Source: Isurus oxyrinchus (taxonomy: Eukaryota). Taken from it: 64,000 nt of DNA. Made by a program: the position numbers and the translations under genes. The notes beneath the pieces are model-generated. The model was not told where the DNA came from. It worked only from the letters and a program-made list of their open reading frames with translations, and did no database searches. The stretch spans positions 1,302,001 to 1,366,000 of the forward strand of contig JANJGN010000071.1 in the NCBI GenBank assembly GCA_026770705.1, read 5' to 3'. Positions 13,430 to 53,975 of this stretch are shown in pieces (position 1 is the stretch's first letter; each line of letters opens with the position of its first letter).

Positions 13430-14130
13430 ACAACAATCCCTGCCTCTGTAACCTGCCCCAGTCACTACAACCCTCCCGACCTCTGCAAACTCCTCCAGAT
13501 TCTACACTCTCCCAATCTCTCTTAACTTTTCCAGCCCCTACAACCCCCCCTATTTCTGTAACTTCCTCCTGCCCCTAAAAGCTTCCCTATCACTGTAGCC
13601 TGCTCCAGTCCCGACAACTTTCCCTACCCCTGTAACCTGCCCCAGTCACTACAACCCTCCCTACCTCTGCAAACTCCTCCAGACCCTACACTCTCCCAAT
13701 CTCTCTTAACTTTTCCAGCCCCTACAACCCTCCCTATCTCTGTAACCTCCTCCAGCCCCTCCAACCCTCTGAGGTCTCTGTGCTCATCCAATTCCAGCCT
13801 CTTGACCATCCCCCGATCCCATCACTACAACATCGGCGGCCGTGCCTTCAGCTGCCTGGGACCCGAGCTCTGTAATACCCTCCCTCAACCCCTCTCCATG
13901 CCTCTCTCTCACTCTCTCTGTCTCTCTCTCTCTCTATCTCTATCTCTCTCTCTCTCACTATCCATTTCATCCCTCTTTGAAGATTCTCCATAACACCGAC
14001 CTCTTCTGGCCAGCTGTCGCTAATATCTCCACACGTGTCTGGGTGACATACTTTGTTTTATGACGCTCCTGTGTAGCACTTTGGGGTGATTTGTCATGTT
14101 AAATTTGTTGTGTAAATATAACTTGTTGCA
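13430..14130 (+). repeat. 37-bp-type repeat array followed by an L2-like LINE 3' end
   Basis: Units like cctacaaccctccctatctctgtaacctcctccagc; GGRAFSCLGP motif. Confidence 0.65.
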
Positions 14131-15400: not shown

Positions 15401-15523
15401 AAAATAATTTGTTGCCATTCTCCTCAGTATTGACCATCCCCCCAATTCAGCCTCATCTGTAAATATCGGGTTCAGTGGATCCACAAACCATCCAGAGTTA
15501 AATATTGATATTTCTCTCCCCAG

Positions 15524-15892
15524 TTGGACTGTCACAAGAGTGGAAAGGTGACACTCCACGAGAGGTGACAGCACAGGAAGGTTCGTGTGTACAGATTCCA
15601 TGTCATTTCAGTTATCCATCGTGTCTGGAAAACCAACCGCGAGGTGGAGTCTGGTTTAATAATGAGGAACATATTCCCTGGGCTCCCATTGACTTTCACT
15701 CCAAGGATCACAGTCACGAGTTACCACGGTTCTGCCATCGGACCCGGCTGTCTGGAGACCTGAAAGATGGCGACTGTTCCTTGATCATAGACAACATCAG
15801 ATGAGAAGATGCGGGACCTTATTTTTTCAGAATAGAATTTGACAATGGTCCAAGCCATAACTATTACCCTGTAACCCAGCTTCACGTTTCTG
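15524..15892 (+). pseudogene. Siglec V-set exon with premature stop (gene B)
   Basis: ctctccccAG acceptor and GTAAGT donor; 369 nt, phase 1-1. EGSCVQIPCHF, GDLKDGDCSL and DAGPYFFRIE show the Siglec Cys pattern and the sialic-acid-binding Arg. TGA at 15802-15804 where the paralogue has CGG. Confidence 0.9.
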
Positions 15893-16618
15893 GTAAGTGC
15901 TGTGTTATAATTACTCAACAATTCACATTCAACACTCAATGGGAAATAACACAAACTGTGACGTTTACATATTAACACAAACACAGTTTATTATAACACA
16001 CTGTCTGATTCTCAATAACCTGGTGATAGCTCCCAGTTCAGTCCTAAAGCAACCTCTAATACTCACTTTAATATCAATGATAAATGTATTGACTGTGTCC
16101 ATCAATGTTATCAAGTTATCCACTCCCATCGATCTCTCTAATCCTGTCTCGAAGTCTGACATATCGACAAAAGAAAGATTCACATTTCTATGGAGCCTTT
16201 CACCACCTCAATATGTACCAAGTCACTTCACAGCCAATGAGCTGATTCCTGAATTGTATTTACTGTTGTAATGTGAGAAACACAGCAGCCAATTTGCGCA
16301 CAGCTAGCTCCCACAAATTGCAAAGTACTAAATGGCCCAGATCATTGAGTGAATGATGGGGTAGTGCACTCCAAACTCTGGTCTGCTCCTCCACCCTCAC
16401 CCACTATTATCAGTTCAAGTGTCTCGGAGTGAACGTGTGTTAAACTGAGAGACAGAAACACCAAAGTCTCAAAGCAGGAAATTCTCTCCTGATCATTGTA
16501 ATCTCTCAGTTCTGATATCATCCTTGTAAAAGAGCTTTTTCTTGTGGGACTGTCATTTCTATTTGAACTGATGCTTCACGTTATATTTCTCTAAAAGGAT
16601 CCATTCTCTGTCTGTTAG

Positions 16619-16915
16619 ATTTCACAGATAAACCCATGATATTCCCTGCTGAAATTATTGCAGGAAAGCGTGTGGATGTAATCTGCACCTTCAACACAAC
16701 GTGCAATGGAACAGCAGCACCTGTCTTAACCTGGGACACTCCCACTGACGTACCTGGATCAGTCTCAAACACTGTAACTCAGCATGGTGTCACTCTGACC
16801 TATACTTCTGTTCTGACCCTGATCCCATCACTCAAACACCACGGACACACACTCAGCTGCAGAGTGAGATATCCATCTGTTTCATCGGAGCGGACTCTCG
16901 TACTAACTGTACAAG
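16619..16915 (+). CDS. Siglec domain-2 C2-set exon (gene B)
   Basis: 297 nt, phase 1-1; DFTDKPMIFPAEIIAGKRVDVICTFNTTCNGTAAPVLTW...LSCRVRYPSVSSERTLVLTVQ. The extra Cys (CTFNTTC) is typical of the Siglec D1-D2 disulfide. Confidence 0.9.
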
Positions 16916-17243
16916 GTAAGTTGAGAAATCCTTCTACATCAGCACTCCCTCAGCGCTGACCCTCTGACAGTGCAGCCCGTTCTCAGTATCCACATTCTCA
17001 TGCCTCTCAATTAGCTTCACAGTCGATAGAAGTTAACTGATCTTTATTTGATTGTTGCTGAATGAAGAGACAAGCTGTTTAAACTTTAAATCTCACACAC
17101 ATTATTTTCCATGGCAACACCTCTGAGACCACTTGCCAATCAATCAGCACTCTCTTCCCTTTAAATATAAATTGTTGTTCACTCTCTGTTGGTAAACATG
17201 CGATCTGTCTTGTTGAGTCCTGCCCTGATATCTGAATATCACA

Positions 17244-17379
17244 ATGAACAGAACAAGTTCCAACAATGAGCTGTGGTTGGTGATTCCTCACGTTAAATCC
17301 AGGGACACTGGAGACTATCAGTGTTTGGCAGAGAATGAACATGGAGCAGTGGAGGGATTCATAACCATCACTGTGGAAT
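17244..17379 (+). pseudogene. 5'-truncated C2 exon relic
   Basis: Only the second half (MNRTSSNNELW...ITITVE, GTGAG donor) of the 282-nt C2 exon remains; the acceptor and first Cys are replaced by unrelated sequence. Confidence 0.85.
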
Positions 17380-19063
17380 GTGAGTGCACACAGATTTCAT
17401 CATCTGTCTCAGATTGAAACATGACACAAACACACACAAATATACAGACCTAAATAGACACCTGCAGATACACAATCCCTTGTATATGAGCACACACAAA
17501 GACACCAACAAACACACTAGCACAATACTCCCCAGTGGGTTACCTGACCTCCCTCAGTGCTGCACTGGAGAGTTGACCTGGATTCTGAGATTTCTGTTCC
17601 CTTTCATGTTTATGGAAGAATATGGAAATTGCAAAGTCTATTACAGACACTCAGATGCATAGAGACACTCACAGATACTCTCTGTCTCTCCAACTCTCTA
17701 TCCTCCTTTAAGAAGCTTCCTGAAACCTAACCCTTTGACCAGTCAATTGTCCCAACTCTTCCTTACCTGAATCTGTGTGAAATTTTGTTTGAGTATCTGA
17801 GAGTAAGAGAGAGGTGGAGAGGTTTAGGAAGGGAATTCCTGTTGGTGAAAAGCTTACATCATGTTCTCACTTTTCCAGTGCCCGTATTTCACCTGATGTC
17901 CAATGTCCTTGTTTATAATAGGGATTGCCTATGTAAACGTCACGCTGTAGTTACACTGTACCACCAGTGGTGGCAAGGTAGCACTTAACCCTTGCATCTC
18001 TCAGCTTTTCAAGCAAATCCACTTCCCAGTTTGCTACACAAGCTGTGAGTTCATCGGAATTAAATTATTTCTCAAACGGTAGATTTGATGTCATTTTATT
18101 GAAAACTTCCTCAGCGCCTCCCTGAAGGGTTTACACTCTCCGGGAAGCAGGAATAGGCTGGATGTTGGGGAGTTCATCTTTTCCCAGAGAGTAGTGATCC
18201 TTGGGAATGTGCTGTCAGTGGGTGTGGTGGTTGCTGTTTCTCTGTCACCTTCAAGAGGGATCTGGAGTGGTTACTGACTGGGGGAGAGATCATGGAAGCG
18301 GAGAATGATACAGCACAGGAGGAGGCCATTCAGCCCATTGTGCCTGTGCCAGGTCTTTCAATGTGCTATCCAATCAGATCCACTAACCACCACTCCACTT
18401 TGCCCCCATCTTCCTCCTTCTAGTGTTTATCCAATTTCCCTTTTGAAAGTTCCTATTGAATCTGCTTCCACCGCCCTTTCAGGCAGAACCTTCCAGATCA
18501 CAACAACTCACTCTGTCAAAACAAATTCTCCTCATCTCCCCCTCCGGTTTGTCAATCTGTGTCCCTCTGGTTACCGACCCTCCTGCTCCTTAAATACATC
18601 GATACTGTTCACATCACCCACTCCCGGTGGGAGCGAGTTCCACATTCTCCCCTCTCTCTGGGTAAAGATTGGAACTGTTTATTAAGCGGGGGGTGTAAGT
18701 CCGTGGGGGAGTCCATCTCGATCCTGCCTGATTCGCACACATGTCCGAGATGGATTTCCACCCGGCACTAAACGTTTCCAGAATTTTCTACAGCACAATC
18801 CTGTACACAGCGATGGAGAGAAACATTGGACAGGGAGTCCAACAGCACAATGATCCATTCTCACCAATGTTCCACGCTAAGGGGAAAGTTCCGATTGTCC
18901 ACTCTTAGAGTGTTTACAATGAAAACATTCATTCCACATTGAATCCCAGTGGATGGGTCAATATTACAGCAAATGTTGCAGTGATATGAAGCTTGATTGT
19001 TCAGCCAGAGTGAGAGATTGAAAGCGGAGAGTCAGTGATGATTTCTTTCTGTGTGTTCTCTAG

Positions 19064-19203
19064 ACAGTGGAGGAGAGATTCTGCACGTGATCCTGATCCT
19101 GGGAATACGAGCTGTGATATTCCTTGTGGCTGTGGTTATCACTATCGCTGGAGTCTGTGTCTGGGAGAGACAAACAGTGAAAGGAAGTCGACAGACTGTT
19201 TGA
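19064..19203 (+). CDS. Terminal TM exon with intramembrane Arg and short tail (activating type, gene B)
   Basis: gttctctAG acceptor, phase 1; (D)SGGEILHVILILGIRAVIFLVAVVITIAGVCVWERQTVKGSRQTV*. Arg codon 19108-19110, TGA 19201-19203. Confidence 0.85.
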
Positions 19204-19309
19204 AGCTTTGTACAGCAACAATCTGGTCAGTCAGTGTGGACAAATAACGTGTGATGTTGGGTTAAGTTGTAAAGAAACTGGTCAGTGTCCTGGTTAGAAT
19301 CACCTTCGT

Positions 19310-19930
19310 ATCAGAGAGGCATTCCAGCACAGTAGGAGTCCATTCAGCCCATTGAGTCCATGCTGTCTCTGTGTAGAGCAATCCACTCAGTCCCATTTCC
19401 CCCTCTCTATCCCCGTATCTCTGCAAGTTTATTTCCCCTCAAGTGTCCAACCAATTTCTGTTTGATATCGTTCATCGTCTCCACTTCCACCATCCTCGTA
19501 GGCAGCGAGTTCCAGCTCATTACCACTCGCTGTGTAAAAAAGTTCCTCCTCACATCCCCCCTCTGCCCAAAACCTTCAATCTGTGTCCCCCAGTCCTTGT
19601 ACCATCAGCTAATGGCAACAGCTTCTCTTTGTCTACCTTATCTAAACCCATCATCATCTTGTACACCTCGATCAGATCCCGCCTCAATCTCCTTTGCTCC
19701 AAGGAGAACAACCCCAGCTTCTCCAACCCAACCTTGTAGCTAAAATCCCTCATCCCTGGACCCATTCTGCTCAATCTCCTCCCCACCCTCTCAAGGACCC
19801 TCACTTCCTTCCCAAAGTGAGGAGACCAGAACTGGACACAATACTCTAGTTGTGACCTAACCAGAGCTTTATAAATGTTCAGCATAACCTCCCTGTGTTT
19901 GTACTCAATCCCTCGATTTATGAAAAGCTT
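19310..19930 (-). mobile_element. CR1 LINE 3' fragment
   Basis: ORF 19550-20017: YKALVRSQLEYCVQFWSPH...LGLFSLEQRRLRRDLIEVYKMM. Confidence 0.9.
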
Positions 19931-20281
19931 ATTCTTTCCATCAGCACAAACAGCAATTTCCAAGCGGACTCCCATCAGCAGACAGAGTGCAATGAAACAT
20001 CGGCATGCCTGCTTCATAATGTACGGAGAGAATCCTGGAACGAGAGATTCTCCTTCTTCTCCTCAGCAAGCTGAAACTTTTCCTTATACCTGGTGCTCCC
20101 CAGTCCTGCTGTGTGGACACATCATAACCACGGCATTGTCTGGCTGTGTGCAGCCAACATGGTCGAATAGGAATGAACAGAAATGTGACGTTGCTAAACT
20201 CTGTTCTCTGATTGGAATGTGCTTTCTGAATGCTGCACCTTTTTCATGCTGCGATAGATTGTAAGAAGCATTTGGGTTATG

Positions 20282-20287
20282 AATAAA
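20282..20287 (+). terminator. Candidate polyadenylation signal for gene B
   Basis: AATAAA at the end of a 3'UTR block homologous to the 3'UTR of the ITIM gene (43700-43883); mirrored at 60613-60618. Confidence 0.5.
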
Positions 20288-21239
20288 ATTACATTGATTA
20301 ACACAAGTGATTAAAATGCTCAGCCTGTTCTGTAGCTATTTATAGATTAAAATTCTTATTTTGCTGCCAAATTCTTGGCTCAAAGACATTACTTCATGTT
20401 GTCACGTTTTCCAATCAGATGAATTCCTGTGCCCATCTTTATAATAGAAATTTCCAAAGTAAACATGTCACATTGCAGCTGCACACACTCCTGCCAGTGG
20501 GTGGTGCGATATGAAGGCTGCCTTGCTGCTCAGAAACAGCGAGAAATATTCCTGTTTTTGCATGAACTTCATGTGTGCATGAAACACAGGCATCAGAAGC
20601 AATTTTGTACAATTTGTACAATGTTCTTTAGACAGCGCAGCACTCCCTCTGTTCAAACCCTCCAACAGTGCAGCACTCCCTCAGTTCAAACCCTCCGACA
20701 TTGCAGCTCTACCTCAGTTCAAACCCTCCGACAGTGCAGCACTCCCTCAGTTCAAACCCTCCGACAGTGCAGCACTCCCTCAGTTCAGACGCTCTGACAG
20801 TGCAGCACTCCCTCAGTACTGATCCTCCGACAGTGCTGCACTACCTCACTAATTAGCGACTGGAAGGTTTATGTTCATTTATCTTTATTTTCCATTCCTA
20901 TTGAGCTATGGAGCTCCTGATTTGTCACCTTTCTGTACCTCGTCCAATGCTTCTGTTATCAGGACTTCCACATCGATGTGAAAGAGCCATGATGATAGCA
21001 GACAGTCGCACAATGGGAATGGCACTAGGCCAGTGATCCAGAGGCCCAGGTGAATGCTTTGGAGGTAAGGGTTCAAATCCCACCACGGCAGCTGGAGGAA
21101 TTTAGATTCGATTAATCAATAAATTTAATTGATTGATACATTTTTTTCTTATTCATTTCAGGGATGTTGGTGTCGCTGACTAGGCCAGTATTTGTTGCCC
21201 ATCCCCAATTGCCTTTGAGAACATATGGATATCTGAGTT

Positions 21240-22170
21240 AGGATCAGGAGTAGGTCACTCAGCCCCTCGAACCTGCTCCGCCATTCAGTAAGATCATGGC
21301 TGATCTGATTGTCACCTCAACCTCACATTCCTGTCTACCCCCAATGACCTTTCACCCCCTTGTTAATCAAGAATCTATCTAGCTCTGCCTTAAAAATATT
21401 CAAAGACCCTGTTTCCACTGCCTTTTGAGGCAGAGTGTTCCAAAGACTTACTACCCTCTGAGAGAAAAGATTTCGCCTCATCTCTATCTTAAATGAGCGA
21501 CCCCTTATTTTTAAAAAATGACCCCCTAGTTCTAGATTCTCACACAAGAGGGAACATCCTCTCCATATCCACCCTGTCAAGACTCCCCTGGATCTTAAAG
21601 GTTTTAATTAAGTCGCCTCTTACTCTTCTAAACTCCAGTGGATACAAGCCTAACCTGTCCAACCTGACCTCATAAGACAAACCACCCATTCCTGGTATTA
21701 GTCTAGTAAACCTTCTCTGAACTGCTTCTAATGCATTTACATCTTTCTTTAAGTAAGGTGACCTTACTGTACAGAGTACTCCAGATGTGGTCTCACCAGT
21801 GCCCTGTACAACTGAACATAACCTCCCTACTTTTCTATTCAATTCCCCACACAGTAAATTATAACATCCCATTAGCTTTCCTCATGACCTGCTGTATCTG
21901 CAAACCAGCCTTTTGTGATTCATGCACGAGGACACCCAGATCCCTCTGCATCTCAGAGCTCTACCATCTCTCACCTTTTAGATAATAATCTTCCTTCTTG
22001 TTCTTTCTGACAAAATGAACACTTTCACATGCGCCCACATTATTCTCCATTTGTCAGATCTTTGCCCACTCACTTAACCTATCGATGTCACTTTCTAACC
22101 ACCTTACATCCTCTTCACAATTTACTTTCCAACCTATCTTTGTGTCAGCAGCTCATTTCGCCGCCATTCC
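21240..22170 (-). mobile_element. CR1 LINE 3' fragment
   Basis: ALEAVQRRFTRLIPGMGGLSYEVRLDRLGLYPLEFRRVRGDLIKTFKI; mostly absent from the inverted copy. Confidence 0.88.
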
Positions 22171-22649
22171 TGGGCAGTCCAGGTGCTTCTCCACCGAGGT
22201 TCAAATGAGCACAGTTTATATATTTTTACTCTCAGTTACAAGGTAATGGTATTAGTTAGACAAAGGCCACAGCACAATGACCCTCCGGTGGGCTGATAAT
22301 TGTGTGCTTGTACAGTAATTACAGGGCAGAAACTGGCTATTGTCCTTTTGAGACAGCAAAGAATCTATGTTTGTTCAATACAAAAGGTTTCCGGAGGCTG
22401 ACTGGATGTGGTTCAAGGCCATCGGACGGTGTGAAATAACCTTCCCCATTTCTTGATTGAGTCACCCTGTGTCCTTGTGTGTGTGTCTCCCATTTCCTCA
22501 TTGCAAATTTACAGCTGAACCCTTTGTACAGGTTTTTAGCTTTCACGTAAGGATGTGATTGTCTGTGTACGCTTTGTCACCCTAGCTGCTGGTCCTGGCT
22601 GGCTCTTTAAAATAAATCCAAATTTTCTGCACCTTCAATGAGATTCTCT

Positions 22650-23720
22650 CTTGTTGAAGCTGGTCATTGCCTGGCACTTGTGTGGCATGAATGTTACTTA
22701 TCACCTGTCAGCCCAAGCCTGGATGTTGTCCAGGTCTTGCTGCATTTGGACATAACTTGCTTCAGTATCTGAGGAGCCGTGAATGGTGCTGAACATTGTG
22801 CAAACATCAGCAAACATCCCCACTTCTGACCTTATGATGGAAGGAAGGACATTGATGAAGCAGCTGAAGATGGTTGAGCCTAGGACACTACCCTGAGTAA
22901 CTCCTGCAGTGATGTCCTGGAACTGAGATGATTGACCCCCAATAATCACAACCATTTTCCTTTGTGCTGGGTCTGACTCCAAGCAGCAGAGAGTTTTCCC
23001 CCGATTCCCATTGACTCCAGTTTTGCTCGGGCTCCTTGATTTGCCACACTCAGTCAAATGCTGCCTTGATGTCAAGGACAGTCACTCTCACCTCACCTCT
23101 GGAGTTCAGCTCATTTGTGCATGTTTGAACCAAGGCTGTAATGAGGCCAGGAGCTGAATGATCCTGGTGGAACACAAACTGAGCGTCAGTGAGCAGGTTC
23201 TTGGTAAGCAGGTGCTGCTTGCAAGCGCTGTTGATGACCCCTTCCATCACTTTAGTAATGATCAAGAATAGACTGCTGGGGAATTGGCTGGGTTGGATTT
23301 GTCCTGCTTTTTGTGTACAGGACGTAACCCATAGACAGGTAGTTGCCAGTGTTGCAGCTGTACTAGAAAATTCCAGAAAGCTTGGCTAGGGGCGCAGCAA
23401 GTTCTGGAGCACAAGTCTTCAGTACTATTGCCGGAATAATGTCAGGGCCTGGAGCATTTGCAATATCCAGTGCCTTCAGCCCTTCCTTGATATCACATGG
23501 AATTAATCGAATTGGCTAAAGATTGGCATCTGTGATGCTGGGGACCTCCGGAGGAGGCCGAGATGGATCACCCACTCAGCACTTCTGGCTGAAGGTTGTT
23601 GCGCATGCTTCAGTCTTGTCTTTTGCACTGGCGGGCTGGGCTCCTCCATCATTGAGGATGGGGATATTTGTGGAGACTCCTCCTCCAGTGAGTTGTTTAA
23701 TTGTCCACGACTGGATGTGA
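22650..23720 (-). mobile_element. CR1-type LINE reverse-transcriptase fragment
   Basis: GVTQGSVLG...FINVLP...MFADV (RT core) and LDIKAAFD; frameshifted. Confidence 0.88.
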
Positions 23721-25559
23721 CATCTGGAATGCGAAGCTAGTCTCAGTAATGGTGACCATGAAACTAAGGCCAATTGTTGCAAAAACCCATCTGGGTCACT
23801 AATGCCCTTTGGGGAAGGAAACCTGCCGTCCTTACCCATTCTGGCCTACGTGTGACTCCTGACCCACAGCAATGTGGTTGACTCTTAACTGGCCCCTGAA
23901 ATGGCCGAGCAAGCTACTGAGTTATATCAAAACCCGCCACAGACCAGTCAAACCAGGCGAACTGCAGCACTTCGAAAAGGCAGCTCAGCACCCCCTTCTC
24001 AAGGGGTCAGTCAGGAACAGGTAACAAACGCTGTCCACATCCCGTGAAACAATTTTGGTAAAAAGGTAGCCCTGTATCACCACCCACGGCCAGCGCCAAC
24101 CCCCCCAACCCTACCTGATTGCACCAGTTTCAGATTACACCAGGTCAATGAACGGATAGAAACCCAAACCAATGAGATGAGCACAGAGAAGGATCAAGCC
24201 AGAGAGAGTTGGTGGGAAGAATTGGGAAAGCAACAAAAAAGGCAGAGCGGACACTAACACTATAACAAAGTAAAGACCAGAGGAGGAAGGAAGCAAGTGT
24301 GAAGAGGAATTGAGAGCAGAGCTGGTAGGCTGCTTGTCAAAGCCAAGGACCCTCCATAGGGCACATCCACAGTGCTGTTGGGGAGGGTGATACATGATTT
24401 TGACCCAGGATCATCAAGTTTTGCACTGGCAGAGCCTTTAAAGAAAAGGGACCTTCACTACCCGTGTCCCCCGCCCAACAAAGCTGTTGACATGCCGAGT
24501 CCACCTGTGCAGGCAACCTCCAGACAGTTGACTACAAAGGCCATTGCAGCTGCTGAATATGACTTCCAGTTTCAAAACCTTCATGAATACAAGGATGGGG
24601 GATTCAGCAGGAATATTCCTGCACATCCTGTGGCAGATCCTGTAAATAAAAGGGACCTTCACTCACTCCTCAAAGCTGCTGACCTGCTGATTCACATCTA
24701 CAGGCAACCTCCAAACAGTCGACTAGAGAAGACAATGCAGCTGCTGAATGTGACTCCTAGTTTCAAACCCTTCACTCTGGAAAGAAGGAATCCAGAGCAA
24801 TGGGCCTCACTATAATACTTGACAGAAACTGATTTTAACTCTCATCTCTAAGTATTATTTTTCCTTTGCTTACATTTTAATCCTTGCACCTGATGGCTTT
24901 ATTGCTTCAACTTAAATAACTTTCAGCAGGAGCCAGGTTCAAATTGAATGGACAAGCAGGCTTGGGAGGCCAAAAGGCCTACTCCTGCTTCTGTTTATTT
25001 ATGTTTGTGTTGTTATGTAGTGGAACTAGAGAGGTTATAGCAGTTATGAGAGCATTAAGCAAACAGCAGCAAGAATTGAATACCTACGTTGTGGTTTATG
25101 AAAAGGTTTTCAACCTGGTCAACTGGTAAAATCTGTTGAAAGTGGGCTATCATGGCGTGTGCCCTTTGTGAGATATTTGTAACAACGTTCTCGATGTCGG
25201 AACAGCTTGCATTGAACAAAGCTGATCTTTACCCAGAACTTCAGAGGAAGGGGGGACAATTGTTCCCTGGTGTGGGGAGCATGGTGGGGGGGGGAGGGTG
25301 GGGGAGAGACAAGTAGCCTGAAATACCAAGCCAGACACTTTGGGAAGACAAAAGTTGTTTATTCATTTTTTTTTACAAATCATCATCTTTACAATTAAAG
25401 TCCCGACAAGATAATGGTGAATCATGAACACATTGTCGGGGTGAATCTGTGCCCGGGAGCAGAAAGCAGCAAAATCAGCAGCCCGCTTTACATCTCTCTG
25501 AATTTTAACTATCATTAACCCCAGTAACATCCATTCAAATGACTTAGTCATAAGATTCC

Positions 25560-25800
25560 TCACACATTCACTTGCACACTCACACACCCACACCCACACA
25601 GACACACTGACACACTCACTCATTCACATTGACACACACTGACACAGTCACACACACCCACACAGACACACTGACACACTCACTCATTCACATTGACACA
25701 CACTGACAGTCACACACACCCACACAGACACACTGACACACTCACTCATTCACATTGACACACACATATTGACAGTCACACACACACACACACACACACA
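25560..25800. repeat. CA-rich compound microsatellite/minisatellite
   Basis: Directly visible; mirrored at ~53820-54125. Confidence 0.9.
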
Positions 25801-26132
25801 CGCTCATAAAGACAGACACAAACACAGTCACGTGAGGTGAATAGTGTCGATGTATTTAAGGGGAAGCTGGATAAACACACGAGGGAGAAATGAATAGAAG
25901 GATATGGTGATGGGGTGAGATGGAGAAGGGATGGGCGGAGACTCGTGTGGAGCAGAAACACCAGCATGGAACAGATGGGCCGAATGGCTTCTTTCCCTGC
26001 TGTAAAACGCAGGTAAAGTTTCAGTTGGAATTAATGAACAGGGCCTGTGTGAAATAGATTGCTAAGCAGTAGATAAGGAGGGGAGAGGCTGTGGCATGGT
26101 GCAGGATGACCTTGCGTGAATGAGGCCAGGGT

Positions 26133-26249
26133 CTAAAATCTACAGCAGAGACCACAAGTCTCATTTGGTTCTCTCCAATTACAGCAGTGACAGCAGAATC
26201 TGCAGCGCCGCTGTCTGCTCATTCTGTTCTGGCGCTGCAGCAAGGAGCC
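26133..26249 (-). CDS. hamp: Hepcidin exon 3 (end of pro region plus 8-Cys mature peptide)
   Basis: gcgtttccAG acceptor, phase 0; GSLLQRQNRMSRQRRCRFCCHCCNWREPNETCGLCCRF* has the C-x2-CC-x-CC-xn-C-G-x-CC hepcidin signature. Confidence 0.93.
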   Translation of the reverse strand, partial: GSLLQRQNRMSRQRRCRFCCHCCNWREPNETCGLCCRF

Positions 26250-28517
26250 CTGGAAACGCAGGAGGACAATAGGTGAGAACATTCCGGAAAGAAAGAAGGC
26301 ATCATTTCAATCAGGCGCGTCATTGGAAGGAGGATGGCGCAATTCTATAGCGCCTTTCCCCTCCTCAGGATGGCCCAAAGTGTTCCACAGCTGAAGGAAG
26401 GACTTTTTCTGAAGTGAGCTCACCGCTGTAATGTAGGAAACGCAGCAGGCAATTCACGCACAGCAAGATCCCACAAACAGAAATGTGATAATGGCCCCGA
26501 TTTTCAGTTTTTTACCAATGTCAGTTGAGGGATAAATGTTTGCCCCAGGAAAGCGGACATAACTGCATCCCATCCACCCCCCACCACCCCCTCCACACAT
26601 ACCCCCAACTCCTGACGCACTTCATTTAAATTGTGGCCATGGAATCCTCTACATCCATCTGAGAGGGCAGATGTTGTCTCAGTTTAACATCTCATCTGAA
26701 AGACAGCGCCTTCAACAGTGCAGCACCCCCTCAGTACTGACCGTCTGACAATGCAGCACCCCCTCAGTACTGACCCTCCAACAGTGCAGCACTCCCTCAG
26801 TACTGACCGTTTGACAATGCAGCACCCCCTCAGTACTGACCCTCCGACTGTGCAGTCCCCCGCCGGTACTGACCCTCTGACAGTGCAGCACTCCAAGACT
26901 GACCGTCTGACAATGCAGCACCCCCTCAGTACTGACCCTCCGACTGTCCTGCCCCCCCGCCGGTACTGACCCTCCGACAGCTCGGTAATTTCTCAATTAT
27001 GCCTGGTGGTCCTTTTAACTCAGAGCTGAGAGTTGCAGAGAATCGAGCACACATCCTGAACTGACACTTGCAGTGCAAGTACTGGGAGCGCGCTGGTCAT
27101 TATCATGCTGCTGTCTGTGGGATCTTACTGTGCGCCAATGGCTGATTCTTTTCCCACAGTACATCAGTGACCTCACATGAAAGAAAAAAAGCACTTGATT
27201 GTCTGCGAAACACTTTGGGACGTCCTGATGTGTTGGAAGGCGCTAGAGAAATGCAAGTCCTCTTTGTCTTTCACTCGATCCTCTAAGGTGTCTGTTGATT
27301 AACCAGCCTCTCGGTGTATGATGTAGGCCTGGTTATAAACAGTTAGAAGGATCAAATATCAAAAATGCTTTGGCTGACAGTCAAACCGATTGTGCATTCG
27401 GAGAGATTAGATATGGTCTGCACACAATGACTCCAGTCTCTGGCACTGACTGCCGCCTGGGGTCTCCCTTCCACATAACACTCACAACTTGCATTTACAC
27501 AGCGCCTCTGACTTTGCAAAATGTCCCAGCCCACATTACCGGAGCGTAAATCAGAGAGAAGTCTAACACTGAGTCACATATGGAGATATTAGGGTTAGGT
27601 GACCAAAAGCTTGGTCAAAGATGTCAGGTTTAAGGAGCGTCTTAAAGGAGAGAGAGAGAGAGAGGCAGAGAGGTTAAGGGAGGGTATTCCGGAGCTCAGG
27701 GCCCCAGGCAGCTGAAGGCACGGCCACCAATGGTGGAGCGATGGGAATCAGGGGGACCCGGGAGATGCAGTAATGTCAGAGATTTTGGAGGAACATCGGG
27801 ACCGGAGGAGGTGTTCTCCTGCTCCATATCTCTCTCTCTCTTCCTCTCATCCACTCCTCCTCTCCCTGTCTCTCTCTCTCCTACTCTTCCTCTCAATTGC
27901 CCTCTCTCCCAATCTTTCACTCCTCTCTCCCTTTTCCTGTCTCTCTCCCTCTCTCTCCCCTGTCTCCTTCTCCCACTCTGTATCTCTCCCTCTCTCTCAC
28001 AGTATTTTTGTACCTTTCGCTCACTCTGTAACTCTCCCTTTCCTGTTAATTTCTCTCTCTTGGACAATCTCTCTTCCCTTTTCACTTTCCCTCACTCCGC
28101 ATCTCTTCTTTAATTTCTCCCTCTGTCACTCTCTCCCACCTATGTTCTTTCCCTTTCACCCCTCCCCGTCCCACTCTCTGTCTCTCTCTTCCAATCCCTC
28201 CCTCCCCCATTCCATCCCTCTCTCCGACTCTCGACTCCCAGCCTCTCTTTAACCCACTCCCAGGCTGGATCAGTCTCCCTCTCACTATTCCCGGCGTGGG
28301 TTACATTTAAAATTCCTGTGGGGATATGTTCACTTCCTTGGAATTGCCTCTTCCCAGCTTTGCAAAAAAAGTGGGGGCGGGGGGGGCTCGATTTCAAACA
28401 TGCCTCCTGAGTATAACCGAGACAGACTGCCACTGAAATCAGCTTGAAATCAGAAAACTTTCTGTGGAAGAAACGAGCAGGGAGAAACCTTAAAATAAGG
28501 AATGAATTTCCACCTAC

Positions 28518-28574
28518 CGTGTCCGGGGAATCCACAGATTTCTCAATCGTCGAAGAACCTAAAGCAGTGTCAAC
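28518..28574 (-). CDS. hamp: Hepcidin exon 2 (pro region)
   Basis: ctttttgcAG acceptor and GTAGGT donor; 57 nt, phase 0-0; VDTALGSSTIEKSVDSPDT. Confidence 0.82.
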
Positions 28575-29404
28575 CTGCAAAAAGAAAGAATTTATCAGGG
28601 AGAAAGTGAGAGGAGGATTGAGGGAGAGGGAGAGAGAGAGAGAGAGGTACAGGAGAGAGAGGGGGAGGAGGACAGACTTGCATTTCTCTAACGCCTTTCA
28701 CCACATCCCAAAGCATTTCACAGCCACTGAAGGATGTTTTTGAAGTGCACTCACACTGTAGGAAATGTGGCAGCTGATTTGTGCACAGCAAGATCCCACA
28801 AATAGCAATGTGATCATGGCCTAGATCATCTGTTTTTGGTGATGTTGGGTGAGGGATAAATATTGGTGCCAGGACACCGGGGAGAACACCCCCTGCTCTT
28901 CCTCCAAATAGTGGCTGTGGGATCTTTCACACCCGCCCGAGAGGGCAGACGGGGGACTCGGTTTAATGTCTCATTCAACATTGTTGTGCTCCCTCAGTAC
29001 TAACCCTTTGACACTGCAGCACTCCCTTAGTATTAACCCTTCGATAGTGCTGCACTCCCTCAGTACTGTCCCTCCGTCAGTGCAGCTCTATTTCAGTACT
29101 AACCCTTCGACACAGCAGCACTCCCTCAGTACTAACCCTTCGATAGTGCTGCACTCCCACAGTATTGTCCCTCCGTCAGTGCAGCGCTCCCTCAGTACTG
29201 ACCCTCCGACACAGCAGCACTCCCTCAGTACTGACCTCCGACAGTATAGCACTCACTCAGTACTGTCCCTCCAATAGTGCAACACTTCCACACTACTGAC
29301 CCTCTGACAGTGCAGCACTCCCTCAGCACGGAGTGTTGACCGACGTTATGGGACTGAATTCCCTGGAGTGAGACTCAGACCAGAGATTTAGGTAGGGTTG
29401 TTCC

Positions 29405-30210
29405 GGCTGGAGGAGGTTACAGAGATAGGGAGGGTTGTAGAGGCTGTAGGAGGTAACAGAGATAGGGAGGGTTCTAGAGGCTGTAGGAGGTGACAGAGAT
29501 AGGGAAGGTTGTAGGGGCTGTAGGAGGTTACAGAGATAGGGAGGTGAGTAGGGGCTGTAGGAGGTTAATGAGATGGGGGGGGTTGTGGGGGCTGGAGGAG
29601 GTTACAGAGGTAAGGAGGGTTGTAGAGGCTGGAGGAGGTTACCAAAATAGATACTGCTGTAGGGGCCACAGTAGGTTACAGAGATAGGGAGAGTTATAGT
29701 GTGGAGAGGACGTTATAGAGTTCATGAGCATTGTAGGGACTGGAGGAGGTTACAGTGATTCTGAGGGTCGTGGGGCCTGGAGGAGGTTACAGAGATAGGG
29801 AGGGTTGTAGGGTCTGGAGGAGGTTACAGAGATAGGGAGGGTTGTAGGGTCTAGAGGAGGTTACAGTGATCATGAGGGTTGTGGGGCCTGGGGGAGGTTA
29901 CAGAGATAGGGAGGTTTATAGGGGCTGGAGGAGGTTACAGAGATAGGGAGGGTTGTAGGGGCTGGAGGAGGTTACGGAGATAGGGAGTGTTGTAGGGGCT
30001 GGAGGAGGTAACAGAGATAGGGACAGTTGTAGGGGCTGGAGGAAGTTACAGAGATGGGGATTGTTGTAGGGACTGGAGGAGGTTACAGATATAGGGAGGG
30101 TTGTAGCGGCTGGAGGAGGTTACAGAGATAGGGAGGGTTGTAGGGGCTGGAGGAGTTTACAGAGATAGGGAGGGTTGTACGGGCTGGAGGAGGTTACAGA
30201 GATAGGGAGT
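29405..30210. repeat. 37-bp minisatellite (ggaggaggttacagagatagggagggttgtaggggct)n in hepcidin intron 1
   Basis: About 21 degenerate copies; same family at ~13430-13770 and ~32860-33110 on the opposite strand. Confidence 0.9.
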
Positions 30211-30410
30211 CGCTGAGGAGGGATTGAAAACAAGAATGAGAATTTCAGGGGAAATGACAGAAGGAAATGATGTTAAATTCATAGAGGGCGACAATATTAA
30301 AGGCACGAACATAATAATATCAAACTGCGGAAGTGACCAGTCTATCTGGGTGGTAGATGTAGAGTCATGTGCAAGAAACACCTCACCCAGAGGGACATCT
30401 CTTAGCTTAC

Positions 30411-30503
30411 CCTCGACAAGGAGAAGAAGTGACTCAGCTGCAGGGAGAGCAGCAAAGTCAGAGTGAACAAGACAAGTCGCCATTTCATCTGGGAGCTTCC
30501 CAT
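30411..30503 (-). CDS. hamp: Hepcidin exon 1 (signal peptide)
   Basis: ATG 30503; MGSSQMKWRLVLFTLTLLLSLQLSHFFSLSR then GTAAGC donor; 93 nt, phase 0. The 31+19+38 aa, all-phase-0 layout matches the vertebrate HAMP structure. Confidence 0.85.
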
Positions 30504-30574
30504 CTCTGCCTGTCTCTTCTGATCTTCTGGCTCTGCTTTGATGCTTTGGTTTGTAACTAGAGGAGCTTCCTGCT

Positions 30575-30790
30575 CTTATACCTGAAACACTTGAAGGGGA
30601 CAGCCGCGGGTGGGTAGCTGTGTGGTATCACACCCATTTCTGGATATTGCAGTGTCGATGTTCCCTGTCCCACTGGCCTGGGACCAGCAGTAAGGTCACT
30701 GGGACATAGACTGTCTGGCGCCGAGAACTATCAGTCCCTCCGCAACGCCCTTCACCTTGTGCAAATATGTGTTCATATTGATGCAACACA
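30575..30790 (-). promoter_or_regulatory. Hepcidin proximal promoter: TATA, BMP/SMAD element, C/EBP-like sites
   Basis: TATAAG 30580-30575; GGCGCC-AGACA-GTCT 30722-30708; TTGTGCAA 30757-30764; TGATGCAA 30779-30786. Confidence 0.72.
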
Positions 30791-35816: not shown

Positions 35817-38800
35817 NNNNNNNNNNNNNNNNNNNNNNNNNNNNNNNNNNNNNNNNNNNNNNNNNNNNNNNNNNNNNNNNNNNNNNNNNNNNNNNNNNNN
35901 NNNNNNNNNNNNNNNNNNNNNNNNNNNNNNNNNNNNNNNNNNNNNNNNNNNNNNNNNNNNNNNNNNNNNNNNNNNNNNNNNNNNNNNNNNNNNNNNNNNN
36001 NNNNNNNCACTCTTTTGCACAAACACTCTTTCACGCACACACATGCACACACACACGCACACAAACGCACAAACTCACTCACACACAAACCCTCACACAC
36101 ACACAGACACAAACATTAGCACACACACACACACACTCACACATGCACACATACTCTCAAACACACACTGTTTTGCACAAACACTTTCTCTTTCACACAC
36201 ACACATACACACACACTCTCTCTCTCACACACATGTTCTCTCTCACTCCCTGTCTCAAACACACAATCTCCCCCTCCCTCAAACACTCACACCATCTCTT
36301 TCTCGCACACTCCCTCTCTCAAACACACACACCCTCTTTCTCAAACACACACACACACATGATCTCACACACACACTCTCACATACACAAACACTCTCTC
36401 ACAGACACACACTCTGTTTTGCACACACACTATCTCACACGCACATTCTCTCTATCTTTCTCTCTCACACATAAATTCTCTCTCACTCTCACAGACGTTC
36501 TCTTTCTCTCACACACACTCTCTCTCTCTCACACACAAGCTACCTCCCTCTCTCATGCACACACACTCTACCTCTCTTTTGCTCTCTCACACATACACAC
36601 TCTCAGTCTCTCACACATACATTGTCTCTCTCTCTCACATAAACGCACTCTCTCTCTCTGAGATGGAAGGTTGGGATTTTGAGACCGTCTCAAGGTTTCA
36701 GCTTAAAATGCGGACGGACTCTTCCCAGTGAGGGAGTGCTGCACTGTTGGAGGGTCAGTACTGAGGGAGTGCTGCACTGTCAGAGGGTCAGTACTGAGAG
36801 AGTGCTGCACTGTTGGAGGGTTAGCACTGAGGGAGTGCTGCACTTCCAGAGGGTCGGTACTGAGGGAGAGCTGCACTCCCAGAGGGTCAGTGCTGAGGGA
36901 GTGCTGCACTCCCAGAGGGTCAATACTGAAGGAGTGCTGCACTCTCAAAGGGTCAATGCTGAGGGAGTGCTGCACTGTCAGAGGGTGGGCACTGAGGGAA
37001 TGCTGCTCTGTCAGACCTGCCATATTTCAGATGACATTTGAAATTAGCAACATGCCTCATGTATAATTATATATCATCAGCTCAAAATAAATAGATTATT
37101 CCTGTACGTTTCACTTTACTGTAAATTGTTTGCAGTTTCATTTCCTTAGAAACCAGGCTTGTGTGATCACTATTTTTAAATAACGTTAATAATAAAGATG
37201 CAACAATCCACACGCACACATGTACACACACACACACATTCACTCACAAGGGTACATAGACAGACACACACTCACNNNNNNNNNNNNNNNNNNNNNNNNN
37301 NNNNNNNNNNNNNNNNNNNNNNNNNNNNNNNNNNNNNNNNNNNNNNNNNNNNNNNNNNNNNNNNNNNNNNNNNNNNNNNNNNNNNNNNNNNNNNNNNNNN
37401 NNNNNNNNNNNNNNNGTTAGAGTCCAATAAAAATTTAAAAGAATATATGATTAATACAATTGCTTGTCTTTGAGGTGCAGATTGTTGACGTTTGCAGCTG
37501 TTCAAGGTTAATTGGTTTCCTGTGGCATCCTGGTGGTGATTTGATTCAGATTTGCACTTTGTTGAAGATGCGCTGTTAGCTTCAGAAAGAGAGAGAGAGA
37601 GAGAGAGAATTTCTGCTCTTTTCCAGCAGTGTTTTTGAGTGACTGCCATCTTTCTTTTTCCTCCTACTTTCTCTTATATCTGCTTGACAGAACCTGTTGT
37701 TAAACTCCTGTCTGTATATTCCCAAAGGGAATTCGATCAGCATGTCTTGCATTCATTGTCGCAGACCAAGTAATCCCTTTTTTGATCTTTGCATCTCTGA
37801 AACATTTGATGCATTTCAAGATATAAATCAACAGGAGATGGAGTCATTTCATCCTCCACAAGGGGTTTTGAATGACTGATGAATATCTGCATGGTGAGCA
37901 GTTCCCATTAGCTTGATAGACCTACAGTGATCAGAGTCCAGCGCTTTGCATTTTTAATGGAGCCCCTGTTTCAAGTGGACCCTGACACACCTCAGTGAGA
38001 ACTTTCATGCAACATGTCTGTAGTGCAATTCATTTGAAGCTTTCCAGAGAAGTGATCAAGTTTGCAGTATCAGCAATCAGGTGACTCGTGACAGCCATTT
38101 TTGATCAATGCCTAATCTTGTACTTTTGAAAAACAGGTCTCCTTTAAACAGTTCAATACGTTTTTGGCTCGTTGGTTAAGTTGAAGGAAGCTCTGTTATG
38201 ACATAACAGATGGTAAATGCTGAGCTGTTCAAATCCTGGAGGGAAACTTGAAACAACTGTCACAACTAATTTCCAACTTGTATGTTTTGAGATGTGGGCT
38301 TTGAATTCAGTAGTAATGAGATTAAGATGTTTAAGAGGTAATTATGGTTGGTTGACAAAAAGGGTTTAAAATATATTTTCCCCCAAATGCAATTTCCAAA
38401 GCAAGTCTCTTTGATTGTTAAGAATGAACCAATTAAACCACGTATGGTGGAGTCAAAGAAAGAGTAAGTTTATTAGTTACCTAACTGGAGGAAAAATAAT
38501 NNNNNNNNNNNNNNNNNNNNNNNNNNNNNNNNNNNNNNNNNNNNNNNNNNNNNNNNNNNNNNNNNNNNNNNNNNNNNNNNNNNNNNNNNNNNNNNNNNNN
38601 NNNNNNNNNNNNNNNNNNNNNNNNNNNNNNNNNNNNNNNNNNNNNNNGACAGACAAATGCGCANNNNNNNNNNNNNNNNNNNNNNNNNNNNNNNNNNNNN
38701 NNNNNNNNNNNNNNNNNNNNNNNNNNNNNNNNNNNNNNNNNNNNNNNNNNNNNNNNNNNNNNNNNNNNNNNNNNNNNNNNNNNNNNNNNNNNNNNNNNNN

Positions 38801-39974
38801 NNNNNNNNNNNNNNNNNNNNNATAATTATAGAGTCCAAGAAAAAATTAAAAGAGTCGTTTGCTTGTACTACAGCGTAGGCTGTGAAGTTTGAAGCTGTTT
38901 TAAATTAGTTGGTTTTCTGTAGATTCCTGTATTTTATCTGGCTCAGACTTGCACATTGTTGAAGACATTCTGTTAGCTTCAGACAGAGAGAGAAAGAGGG
39001 AGAAATCATTTCTGCTCTTTTCCAGCAGTGTTTGTGGAAGACTGCCATATTTCTTTTTCCCCTCCTTTCTCTTATATCTGCTTGGCAGAACCATTTGTTA
39101 AACTCCTGTCTGTATATCCCTGAAGTCAATTCGATCAGCATGTTTTGCATTCATTGTTATAGACCAAGTATTCCCATTTTTTTATCTTTGCATCTCTGAA
39201 ACCTTTGATGCATTTCAAGATATAAATCAACAGGAGACGGGGGTATTGTATCCTCCACAGGGGGTTTTGAATGGTTGATGATTATCCGCTTGGTGAGCAG
39301 TTCCCAATGTTTTGATAGAACTACAGCTGATCAAAGTCCAGCACTTTACATTTTAATGCCTTCCTTTTAAGAGTGTCTCTATTTGAAGTGGACCCTGACA
39401 CACCCCAGGCGTGAACTTCCATGCAACAGGTCTGCAGTGCAATTCATTTGAACCTTTCCAGAGAAGTGATCAACTTCACAGTATCAGCAATCAGGTGACT
39501 TGTGTCAGCCATTTTTGATCTGTGTACAATCTTGTATTTCTTTGAAAAACAGGTCGCTTTTAGACAGTTCAATATGTCTTTGGTCTCTTAGTTAAGTTGT
39601 AGGAAGCTCTTAATCGCAGTTTGTTGTCATTGGGATATTGCCTTTGTGTGTGTGTTTGTGTGTGTGAGTGAGTGTGTGAGTGAATGTGTGTGTGTGAGTG
39701 AATGTGTGTGTGTGTGTGAATGTGTGTGTTTGTGTCTGTCTGNNNNNNNNNNNNNNNNNNNNNNNNNNNNNNNNNNNNNNNNNNNNNNNNNNNNNNNNNN
39801 NNNNNNNNNNNNNNNNNNNNNNNNNNNNNNNNNNNNNNNNNNNNNNNNNNNNNNNNNNNNNNNNNNNNNNNNNNNNNNNNNNNNNNNNNNNNNNNNNNNN
39901 NNNNNNNNNNNNNNNNNNNNNNNNNNNNNNNNNNNNNNNNNNNNNNNNNNNNNNNNNNNNNNNNNNNNNNNNNN
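35817..39974. other. Assembly-gap region (N runs 35817-36007, 37276-37415, 38501-38647, 38664-38821, 39743-39974)
   Basis: N characters in the sequence. Confidence 1.
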
Positions 39975-41639: not shown

Positions 41640-42696
41640 GACACTGGCGAGGCCAGAATTTATTGCCCATCCCTAATTGTCCTTGAGAATATGGGGGTGA
41701 GCTGCCCTCCTGAGCTGCTGCAGTCCCTGTGGTGTATGTACACCCACAGAACTGTTTGGGAGGGTGTTGCAGGATTCTGACCCAGCGACAGTGAAGGAAC
41801 GGTGATATATTTCCAAGTCAGGATGGTGAGTGACTTGGAGGGGAACTTCCAGGTGGTGGTGTTCCCATGTGTCTGCTGCCCTTGTCCTTCGAGATGTTAG
41901 TGATCATGTGTTTGGAAGGTGCTGTCTAAGGAGGCTTGGTGACTCCCTGCATTGCATCTTGTAGATGGTACACACACTGCTGCCACTGTGCGTCAGTTGT
42001 AGAGGGAGAGAATGTTTGTGGACGGGGCGCAAATCAAGCGGGGCTGCTTTGTCCTGGACGGTGTCGAGCTTCTTGAGTGTTGTTGGAGCTGCACTCATCT
42101 AGGAAAGTGGAGAGTATTCCATCACTTGTGACCTGTGCCTTGAGGTTGGTGGACAGGCTTTGGGGAGTCAGGAGGTGAGTTACTCACCACAGGATTCCCA
42201 GGCTCTGGCCTGCTCTTGTAGTCACAGTGTTTATATGGCTAGTACAGTTCAGTTTCTAGTCATTGGTAACCCCCAGAGTGTTGATAGTGTGGGATTCAGC
42301 AATGGTGATGCTATTGGACATTAAGGGGAGATGGATATATTCTCTCTGGTCGGAAATGGTCATTGCCTGGCACTTGTGTGGCATGAATGTTACTTGCCAC
42401 TTGTCAGGCCAAGCCTGGATATTGTCCAGGTCTTGCTGCATTTGGACATGGACTGCTTCAGCATCTGATGAGTCATGAATGATGTTGAACGTTGTGCAAT
42501 CATCAGCGACCTTCCATAATTCTGACCATCTGATAGAATGAATGTCATTGATGAAGCAGCTGAAGATGGTTGGGCCTAGGACACTACACTGAGCAACTCC
42601 TGCAGTGATGTCCTGGAACTGAGATGACTGACCTCCAACAACCACAACCACCTTCCTTTGTACTTGGTATGAATCCAACGAGTGGAGAGTTTTCCC
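41640..42696 (-). mobile_element. CR1-type LINE RT fragment, interrupted by an LTR
   Basis: GVAQCSVLGPTIFSCFIND...VADDCT...QQDLDNIQAW; the element resumes at ~43593. Confidence 0.85.
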
Positions 42697-46420: not shown

Positions 46421-47235
46421 CTGTAAAAACAGCCATTAATTACTGCACTACAGGTTTACAATGATGCTCCGATGTATCTCGAGAAGCGATACACTCACTC
46501 AGTGTTTAAATACTCATTCTCGGGCAATGCTGACATTTATTTTCCATCCCTAGTTTCCCCTTGAGAAGGTGGTGGGGGGTCTTCCTCCTGAACCACTGGT
46601 TTGTCCCAAACTGGGAGACCAGTTCAGAGGGCAGGTAAGAGTTAACCATGTTGGTGTCTGAGACTGGAGTCACATCCACATCGAGACATGCTTCCCTCCC
46701 TTAAAGGGTATGTAGTCTCTACACATGTAACAACCAACCTCACTGAAATAATCGACTATCAGGTCATTATCACACGGTGGTTTGCGGGATCTTGCTGTGC
46801 ACAAATCAGTACCTGTGTTTCCTACATTACAACAGTGAGCTCACTTCGATAATGCTTCACTGGCTGTTGAATGTTTAGTAATTTCTAAGCAATTTATGAA
46901 TACAAGTGTTGCATTTCAAAGTAATCCATGTAACATTTATATATATTTATCAATTAAAGAATGAGAAGTTCAGCAATTAAAAGGGTTGTTCAGGACAGTT
47001 AGAGAGAGAAAGGTCGTCAAGTACGGAGATTGGAAACGAAGACCTGACAGCCTTGTCCTGACAACCATTGAAGGAGAAACTGAGAGCAAAAACAGAAAGG
47101 GAGAGGAAAAATTGGATGTGTGGATAACGTGGACTGAGCGAGGATTGAAGAAAACTGGATTAAAAACAACACGATCCCAATGGCTCCACGGAGACCACGG
47201 AGACAACAAACAAACAAATGTATCTCCACACTCAC

Positions 47236-47517
47236 GTTCCACAGTGATGGTTATGAACCCCTCCACTGCTCCATGTTCATTCTCTGCCACACACTGATAG
47301 TCTCCAGTGTCCCTGGATGTAACGTGAGGAATCACCAACCACAGCTCATTGTTGGAACTTGTTCTGTTCATTGGGACATTAAGATGTCGCCACGTCAGGT
47401 TAGAAGCTGGGAAGCTCTCGACAGAGCAGATTATCACTGCAGAATTCCCCTCAATTATATTGATCGATGAAGCGTTAATCATACCAAGTGAAGTAAATGA
47501 GAGATCCTGTGGTGCAT
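47236..47517 (-). CDS. C2-set Ig exon 3 (gene C), open
   Basis: 282 nt, phase 1-1; DAPQDLSFTSLGMINASS...ICSVESFPASNLTWRH...GDYQCVAENEHG...TVE. Confidence 0.9.
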
Positions 47518-48208
47518 CTAAAAACAAATCAAGTGTTTAATGTGAGCAAACCTATTGCACAGCAAGACTCCATGCATCATATCTCTGTATCTGATGTCTG
47601 AATGCATTTCCAGGTAACTTCCCTCAGGATAACGTCTTATGCCACATTTTTAATGGACACTGCCTATGTAAACTGTCACACTGCAGTTGCATTCTCCCAC
47701 CAGTAGAGGTGTTGTCCATCTAGAATGAAAGAAGCTTGCTTTCACATCCTCAGGATTTCGCAAAGGGCTGGACAGGCAATGAATTGTACTTGATTGATGG
47801 AGCACTGAGGGGTAAATCTACAATTCTCTGTTCAGGAGGTTGCTCATCCAATTCAGGGTCTTGTTGATCTGGAGTTTACCTTCCTTCAACACAGAATCGG
47901 AGCTGATACCAAGACTCCAGTGCGGCACTGAGAGAGGAGAGGGAACTCACGTGTGTATATCTGTGTGTTTGTGTTTCTGCACATGTGAGTGTGTTTGTGT
48001 GTGTATGCACACATGTGTCTGTGTGTGTGCATGCGCGTGTGTCTGTGTGTCTAGGTCTGTCCATGAGTGAGAGTATGTGCATGTGTGTGTCTATGTGTGG
48101 GCATGAATGTGTGTGTGTGTTTGAGATGGGTGTGTATTTTCCTGTGTATGTGCTTGTATGTGTATGACTGTGTGTGGATAATTATGCATGTGTGTGCCTA
48201 CAGGTTTC

Positions 48209-48241
<33 letters not shown>

Positions 48242-53935: not shown

Positions 53936-53975
<40 letters not shown>

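Follow-up and report, generated by a model that had tools for sequence, protein, structure and literature searches.

A long-loop hepcidin gene from a transcribed multi-copy family in a Siglec/MAG cluster of the shark Isurus oxyrinchus

Introduction

Iron in vertebrates is governed by a master hormone, hepcidin; to our knowledge, its division into an iron-regulating form and others that serve defence has been recognised in teleosts alone. Here we describe a hepcidin gene of the shark Isurus oxyrinchus, designated copy 1, which lies on the minus strand of a 64-kb stretch of contig JANJGN010000071.1; this whole stretch is referred to below as the window, and all positions are counted within it. 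Copy 1 belongs to an expressed family whose members share a hairpin loop of eight residues and differ in the residues immediately before the first cysteine (Cys1) of the hepcidin domain. It was first proposed in a first-pass annotation of the window made from the letters alone.

Gene structure and family membership

The prepropeptide is encoded by three exons that contribute 31, 19 and 38 residues, with both introns in phase 0 and, as read from the sequence, GT..AG at all four splice borders. The coordinates and the 88-residue translation given in the first-pass annotation proved exact on re-reading. The coding part of exon 1 (30411-30503, minus strand) begins with an ATG at 30503 that has a purine at -3 and a G at +4. 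It specifies a 31-residue signal peptide with a signal-like hydrophobic core (grand average of hydropathy 2.07) and ends at the donor AGG/gtaagc (30411/30410). Intron 1 (28575-30410, 1836 nt) consists mostly of repeats. Exon 2 (28518-28574) supplies 19 residues of pro-region between an acceptor ending in ttgcag and the donor ACG/gtaggt, and is followed by intron 2 (26250-28517, 2268 nt), within which, at 28034, lies the edge of an inverted duplication. The coding part of exon 3 (26133-26249, acceptor tttccag) comprises 38 codons and a TAG stop and carries the end of the pro-region, the cleavage sites and the mature peptide. The polypyrimidine tracts at the acceptors are good. The 3' untranslated region extends at least across 25900-26132, with an AATAAA near 25360.

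Homology searches were run exon by exon, with single exons as queries. A comparison with the hepcidin profile had been suggested as a check on the gene, and exon 3 of copy 1 alone scores above the threshold of Pfam PF06446 (Hepcidin; 29.9 bits, E 7e-7, cut-off 27), and the alignment pairs 34 exon-3 residues with 30 profile positions, so that the shark sequence has a net surplus of four. Exon 3 matches a single solved structure, that of bass hepcidin (1S6W), in an alignment that leaves four loop residues of the shark peptide without a bass counterpart. When the window is translated in six frames, the cysteine pattern C-x2-CC-x-CC-x8-C-x2-CC (spacing 2/1/8/2/2) is found at two places, and 100 shuffles gave none. 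A search of the ESM Atlas placed hepcidin clusters at ranks 2 and 3 with scores of 0.76 and 0.75, which we treat as a lead only, and a phmmer search of the 38 residues against 1.84 billion representatives gave two weak matches to long cysteine-rich proteins (E 5e-4 and 8e-4), a result that is uninformative for so short a query. We also set aside an AlphaFold2 model of exon 3 built from the single sequence with no alignment (mean predicted local distance difference test score 68.7), as the two helices that it shows are not credible for a hairpin with four disulfides. In its profile score, its cysteine pattern, its three-exon layout, its R-X-(K/R)-R cleavage site and its MAG/Siglec neighbourhood the gene has the features of the hepcidin family, and copy 1 is an intact gene for a secretory prepropeptide of that family.

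Transcription and splicing

To look at transcription, contigs of four public runs were aligned to positions 25900-30700 of the window. Runs X1 and X4 come from one organism (organism A) and run X5 from a related one (organism B); the contigs of X1 and X4 match the stretch best among the runs. Both predicted introns are present as exact joints in RNA-like contigs, in agreement with the spliced transcript that the gene model had called for. The joint across intron 1 (28574 to 30411; aligned as 28572->30409, cut +2) is carried by 11 contigs of X1 and one of X4, and that across intron 2 (26249 to 28518; aligned as 26248->28517, cut +1) by eight contigs of X1 and one of X4. On the plus strand the skipped stretches are bounded by CT..AC, equivalent to GT..AG on the strand of the gene. 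The joint between exons 2 and 3 is found at low depth in X5 also, and a variant form of it is common to X1 and X5.

Summed contig word depth is a poor measure of expression, and the tissue and library of X1 are not on record, but the contrast within the locus is large: X1 word depth is ~170,000-800,000 over the three exons and the 3' untranslated region and ~700-2,000 in unique intron bins. Depth is highest at the 3' end of the gene (600,000-800,000 in bins 25900-26221), and even the short exon 2 stands out, with ~172,000 in its bin against ~1,000-2,000 in the adjacent intron bins. So large a difference in depth, combined with joints that match the predicted introns exactly, identifies X1 as RNA and the hepcidin family as one of the most abundant messages of the X1 sample. 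A minor alternative acceptor lies within intron 2 at 27328 (minus strand); it is used in a single X1 contig (27327->28517) and would add nine codons followed by a stop, giving a truncated product.

Copy number and the expressed paralogue

The first-pass annotation did not recognise that the gene is one copy of several: the window contains a second exon 3, and a third, near-identical sequence is expressed, so that we are dealing with a multi-copy family. The second exon 3 (copy 2; 53372-53488, plus strand) scores 31.6 bits against Pfam Hepcidin, has an intact frame, an acceptor site and all eight cysteines, and encodes the same loop, preceded by an RQKR site and a six-residue head. No exons 1 and 2 for copy 2 were found in the window outside its five N gaps (35817-39974); copy 2 may be either a truncated duplicate or an exon served by other upstream exons. 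A weak tblastn match at 41960-42022 was rejected, its translation not being hepcidin-like.

Which gene gives rise to the abundant message? At five exon-3 positions (26226, 26209, 26206, 26189 and 26137), the letter of copy 2, not that of copy 1, accounts for ~86-99% of the depth in X1, and the commoner X1 joint between exons 2 and 3 has ATG where copy 1 ends exon 2 with ACG. Copy 2 is not the source either, as its letters at 26219, 26265 and 26347 are not seen in X1, although X1 intron contigs carry (from a loose end at 27244) a 163-nt insertion that is found in the intron of copy 2 and not in copy 1. We conclude that a further gene or allele, the third, complete and near-identical to the other two sequences, is the source of the dominant message. 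The insertion itself, at 52246-52396 of the window, contains an inverted repeat and resembles a small mobile element.

Letters of the copy 1 type nonetheless persist in X1 at depths of ~4,000-36,000, well above the intron level, and one X1 intron contig (26596-26740) has the letters of copy 1 at the places that distinguish it from copy 2. Copy 1 itself is probably expressed to some extent.

In exon 3, copies 1 and 2 are separated by six differences, every one of them non-synonymous. This amounts to 5.1%, compared with 1.8% over 1,985 nt of non-coding DNA that flanks the exon (Fisher p 0.026), and at five of these six positions it is copy 1 that departs from the other versions. Either diversifying selection or gene conversion with another paralogue as donor would fit, but the sites are few and the pattern is no more than suggestive.

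The extended loop and the predicted mature peptide

Four versions of exon 3 could be compared: copy 1, copy 2, the major form in X1 and a version from organism B (a contig of run X6, ~4% diverged). The loop, NWREPNET (26157-26180, minus strand), is identical in all four, and the claim that the hairpin has eight loop residues with an N-E-T sequon is thereby confirmed in two organisms; the known hepcidins compared have four or five residues here. From Cys1 to the C-terminus only two residues vary among the four versions: the one that separates the cysteine pairs (H or N) and the last (F or Y). The hexapeptide immediately before Cys1, by contrast, differs in every version, reading, after a shared M, SRQRR in copy 1, GRQQL in copy 2, SRQQL in the X1 major form and SQHQF in organism B.

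These changes affect where the propeptide is likely to be cut. In copy 2, the dominant X1 transcript and organism B, an RQKR site is followed by six residues before Cys1, which is the spacing of hepcidin-25, and there is no RQRR. In copy 1 alone, this older site is weakened to RQNR, and 18 nt downstream of it a derived proprotein-convertase site, RQRR (26205-26216, minus strand), stands directly before Cys1, with no equivalent in the other three versions. The mature peptide of copy 1 is therefore predicted to have 23 residues, to begin at Cys1 (26136-26204, minus strand; the position of cleavage is inferred) and to lack any N-terminal head. It would contain all eight cysteines and have a net charge of +0.8 and an isoelectric point of 7.7; across the family the predicted products are weakly cationic (+0.8 to +3.5).

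None of these peptides has the head of a type 1 hepcidin, in which a hydrophobic residue (position 4) follows His3: copy 1 is headless and the heads of the paralogues are MSRQQL, MGRQQL and MSQHQF. The earlier claim that the His/aromatic head is missing thus stands for copy 1, which has no head after RQRR, although the headless N-terminus is itself specific to copy 1 and the paralogues keep six residues. A different head is seen in one X1 contig, which follows the common pro-region of exon 3 as far as 26217 (its loose end) and then reads HLSICMYCCG, a canonical head with His3, Leu4, Ile6 and Cys7. This suggests that a separate paralogue with an SHLSIC head is also expressed, presumably from elsewhere in the genome.

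The N-E-T sequon in the loop is not distinctive, since bass hepcidin has N-M-S at the aligned place (PNMS for PNET, with NWRE extra in the shark). Bass hepcidin was reportedly unglycosylated when purified, and glycosylation of the shark loop, as far as its sequence goes, is possible but unsupported.

Promoter

X1 depth falls from ~312,000 (30408-30568) to ~7,700 (30569-30700), and one X4 contig ends at 30547. The drop beyond 30568, together with a TATA-like box (tataaga; 30574-30580, minus strand), places the likely start of transcription near 30550; a start ~25-30 nt downstream of the box fits both the drop and the end of the X4 contig. Some 160 nt upstream of the likely start lies an exact bipartite GGCGCC-N5-GTCT (30708-30722, minus strand), the sole match in the window against 0.03 expected from shuffles. 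GGCGCC-N5-GTCT is the bipartite BMP/SMAD element of the HAMP and Id1 promoters and, by analogy with these, the shark element may well respond to BMP/SMAD signalling.

Genomic neighbourhood

A comparison of the window with itself by blastn reveals an inverted duplication of ~12 kb. Its left arm (15646-28034) comprises Siglec/MAG-like exons, the 3' untranslated region and exon 3 of copy 1 and part of intron 2; its right arm (51455-64000) runs off the end of the window. The arms are 92-99% identical in collinear blocks. The inner edges of the duplication lie in low-complexity GA/GT-rich DNA and the five N gaps (35817-39974) lie between the arms; the inverted duplication may be an artefact of assembly.

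The Siglec/MAG-like gene (15502-16956, plus strand) has a V-set exon at 15502-15801 and a C2-set exon at 16567-16956, with Pfam matches to V-set and C2-set_2 and a weak one to Ig_CD22, and these exons are mirrored on the minus strand at 62679-64000. The best relative of the V-set exon among solved structures is myelin-associated glycoprotein (E 8e-10), followed by Siglec-5, -8, -10, -7 and CD33. In mammals HAMP and MAG are immediately adjacent. On human chromosome 19, HAMP, USF2 and MAG share one locus (PMC4453067). Since the shark gene has Siglec/MAG-like neighbours, this arrangement supports the view that the window corresponds to the HAMP locus, which would here have been amplified together with Siglec genes.

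Function of the long-loop hepcidins

The reading that we favour, with a probability of roughly 0.6, is that copy 1 is a transcribed member of a multi-copy shark hepcidin subfamily situated in a Siglec/MAG cluster, that this subfamily is a type-2-like side branch and not the ferroportin hormone, and that the product of copy 1 itself is headless. A secreted prepropeptide, with a signal peptide, a short pro-region and an eight-cysteine domain, would be made and then cut by a convertase of the furin type, and the product would fold as the disulfide-locked hepcidin hairpin with its turn lengthened from four or five residues to eight. In copy 1, five derived amino-acid changes have weakened RQKR to RQNR and created RQRR before Cys1, so that a headless peptide of 23 residues would be released. 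The likely role of such products would be in host defence or in some other function that does not involve ferroportin.

Three observations speak for a type-2-like branch: the heads of the family are without the S-H-L/F motif, no other part varies so much from copy to copy as the head, and a transcript with a canonical head is present in X1. In hepcidin-25 it is the six residues before Cys1 that carry ferroportin binding. In teleosts, the type 1 hepcidins, with their Q-S/I-H-L/I-S/A-L heads, regulate iron, whilst those of type 2 serve antimicrobial defence (PMC8502971). Judged from the shark peptides, a non-iron, type-2-like role is plausible. The first-pass annotation had likewise assigned the gene to a non-iron-regulatory class, and the evidence on this is divided: the absent head motif and the canonical-head transcript fit a family divided between one canonical class and one that has diverged, but the BMP/SMAD element and the very high expression speak against a non-iron role.

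These last two features are both hallmarks of an iron-regulated liver gene, and they weigh against our reading. The canonical-head paralogue is represented by one contig with 35 loose letters, and copy 1 contributes little or nothing measurable to X1 (~86-99% of exon-3 depth being non-reference). At +0.8 the 23-residue peptide is almost neutral, which is poor for a membrane-active antimicrobial. Nor is the length of the loop alone an argument against ferroportin binding, since in the cryo-electron microscopy structure of ferroportin with hepcidin the hairpin turn reportedly points away from the transporter.

Could the long-loop peptides be the iron hormone of sharks, or one of several? They would then be driven by BMP/SMAD signalling and expressed in the liver, the 29-residue forms would bind ferroportin, and the loop would be a tolerated decoration facing away from the transporter. 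The exact element ~160 nt upstream of the start, found once in 64 kb where 0.03 would be expected, and the extreme word depths over the exons are both what this would lead one to see, and the dominant transcript, copy 2 and organism B resemble hepcidin-25 in having RQKR and six residues, a hydrophobic residue at position 6 and a Phe at position 9. Against this, the head has neither His3 nor the hydrophobic residue at position 4 and is different in every copy, copy 1 has no head at all after RQRR, and a transcript with an SHLSIC head is present in the same run; in teleosts, loss of the motif accompanies loss of the iron role (PMC8502971). We consider an iron-hormone function for the long-loop peptides unlikely, at perhaps one chance in five.

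Slightly less probable again is that copy 1 is a decaying duplicate with little or no expression, and that the joints were contributed by near-identical paralogues whose contigs map onto it. The preponderance of the other letter (~86-99% of X1 depth) at the five copy-1-specific positions of exon 3, the ATG in place of ACG at the end of exon 2 in the major joint variant and the X1 intron contigs with the 163-nt insertion found in copy 2 and not in copy 1 can all be read in this way, as can the clustering of five derived non-synonymous changes in exon 3. Against this, copy 1 has its frame, its four splice sites, its TATA box, its BMP element and all eight cysteines intact, and X1 contains eight contigs with the reference-type exon 2-3 joint, reference-type letters at depths (~4,000-36,000) above the intron level and the intron contig 26596-26740, which has the sequence of copy 1 where copy 2 differs. 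It is very improbable, finally, that the long-loop class is N-glycosylated at N-E-T and, having been amplified together with Siglec receptors, supplies abundant secreted sialoglycopeptide ligands or decoys that stand outside both iron control and the killing of microbes.

Comparison with known hepcidins

By sequence, the teleost type 2 hepcidins (HAMP2) are the closest to the shark family in architecture and core. The core of sea bass hamp2 and of hybrid bass hepcidin (1S6W), CRFCC-N-CC ... CG-V/L-CCRF, is near-identical to that of the shark (bass peptide quoted in PMC8502971), copy 2 having CRFCCNCC in common with bass hepcidin, and the two groups are alike in having no QSHLS head, multiple copies with diversifying changes, a P-N-x-S/T motif in the loop and three exons. 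They differ in that the shark loop has eight residues (NWRE before PNET) and the teleost loop five, in the location of the shark genes in a Siglec/MAG cluster and in the start of copy 1 at Cys1. The shark expansion, which arose in a cartilaginous-fish lineage, is presumably independent of teleost HAMP2. The likeness drawn here is one of architecture and function only.

With hepcidin-25 (HAMP) and the teleost type 1 peptides, the shark gene shares the Pfam family, the eight-cysteine pattern, three exons, a site of the furin type, a BMP element near the start and the MAG/Siglec neighbourhood; six residues before Cys1, the number in hepcidin-25, are present in the shark paralogues only. Unlike these peptides, the shark family has neither a D-T-H-F-P-I nor a Q-S-H-L-S-L head, has a loop of eight residues as against four (HRSK) or five, is multi-copy and apparently exists beside a separate canonical-head transcript. 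In having no N-terminal head, the predicted product of copy 1 is like human hepcidin-20 and -22, which reportedly do not regulate ferroportin, but the truncation would be encoded in the shark by a new (predicted) convertase site and would not arise by later trimming.

Hepcidin is listed in the plasma proteome of the nurse shark (PMC9207270). In the open-access literature on shark, elasmobranch and chondrichthyan hepcidin we found passing mentions, with no sequence description and no loop motif; such genes may already appear under a hepcidin-like label in automatically annotated shark genomes. The shark genes extend a pattern already familiar for hepcidins, that of duplication with divergence, and copy 1 is a minor member of an expressed shark long-loop family. 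If our reading is true, hepcidins would have expanded a second time, independently, in cartilaginous fish, and the case would show how readily the scaffold is put to new uses and which of its parts can vary freely. With its invariant doubled loop, hypervariable head and very high expression, the shark expansion would also be a natural experiment on the part, if any, that the hairpin turn plays in ferroportin binding.

Other immunoglobulin exons and repeats in the window

Beyond the Siglec/MAG-like gene, the window contains three tandem immunoglobulin (Ig) exons at 46973-49636 (minus strand) and related Ig exons at 615-959 and 1866-2114 (plus strand). These exons (I-set/C2) are near-identical, recur at intervals of approximately 1 kb and are each followed by a GT/CA microsatellite; they belong to a Siglec/CD22-like gene with tandemly duplicated domains.

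Two kinds of tandem array are prominent, and both are found within intron 1. An array of a 37-nt unit in 22 copies (82% matches; 29389-30209) fills much of the intron, and a similar array lies at ~13430-13770. Arrays of a 33-nt unit with a 99-nt higher order, resembling a short interspersed nuclear element, are found at 28989-29326, and also at 26715-26980 and 59226-60270. This 33-nt element draws very many contigs from all of the runs and is a highly abundant genomic repeat.

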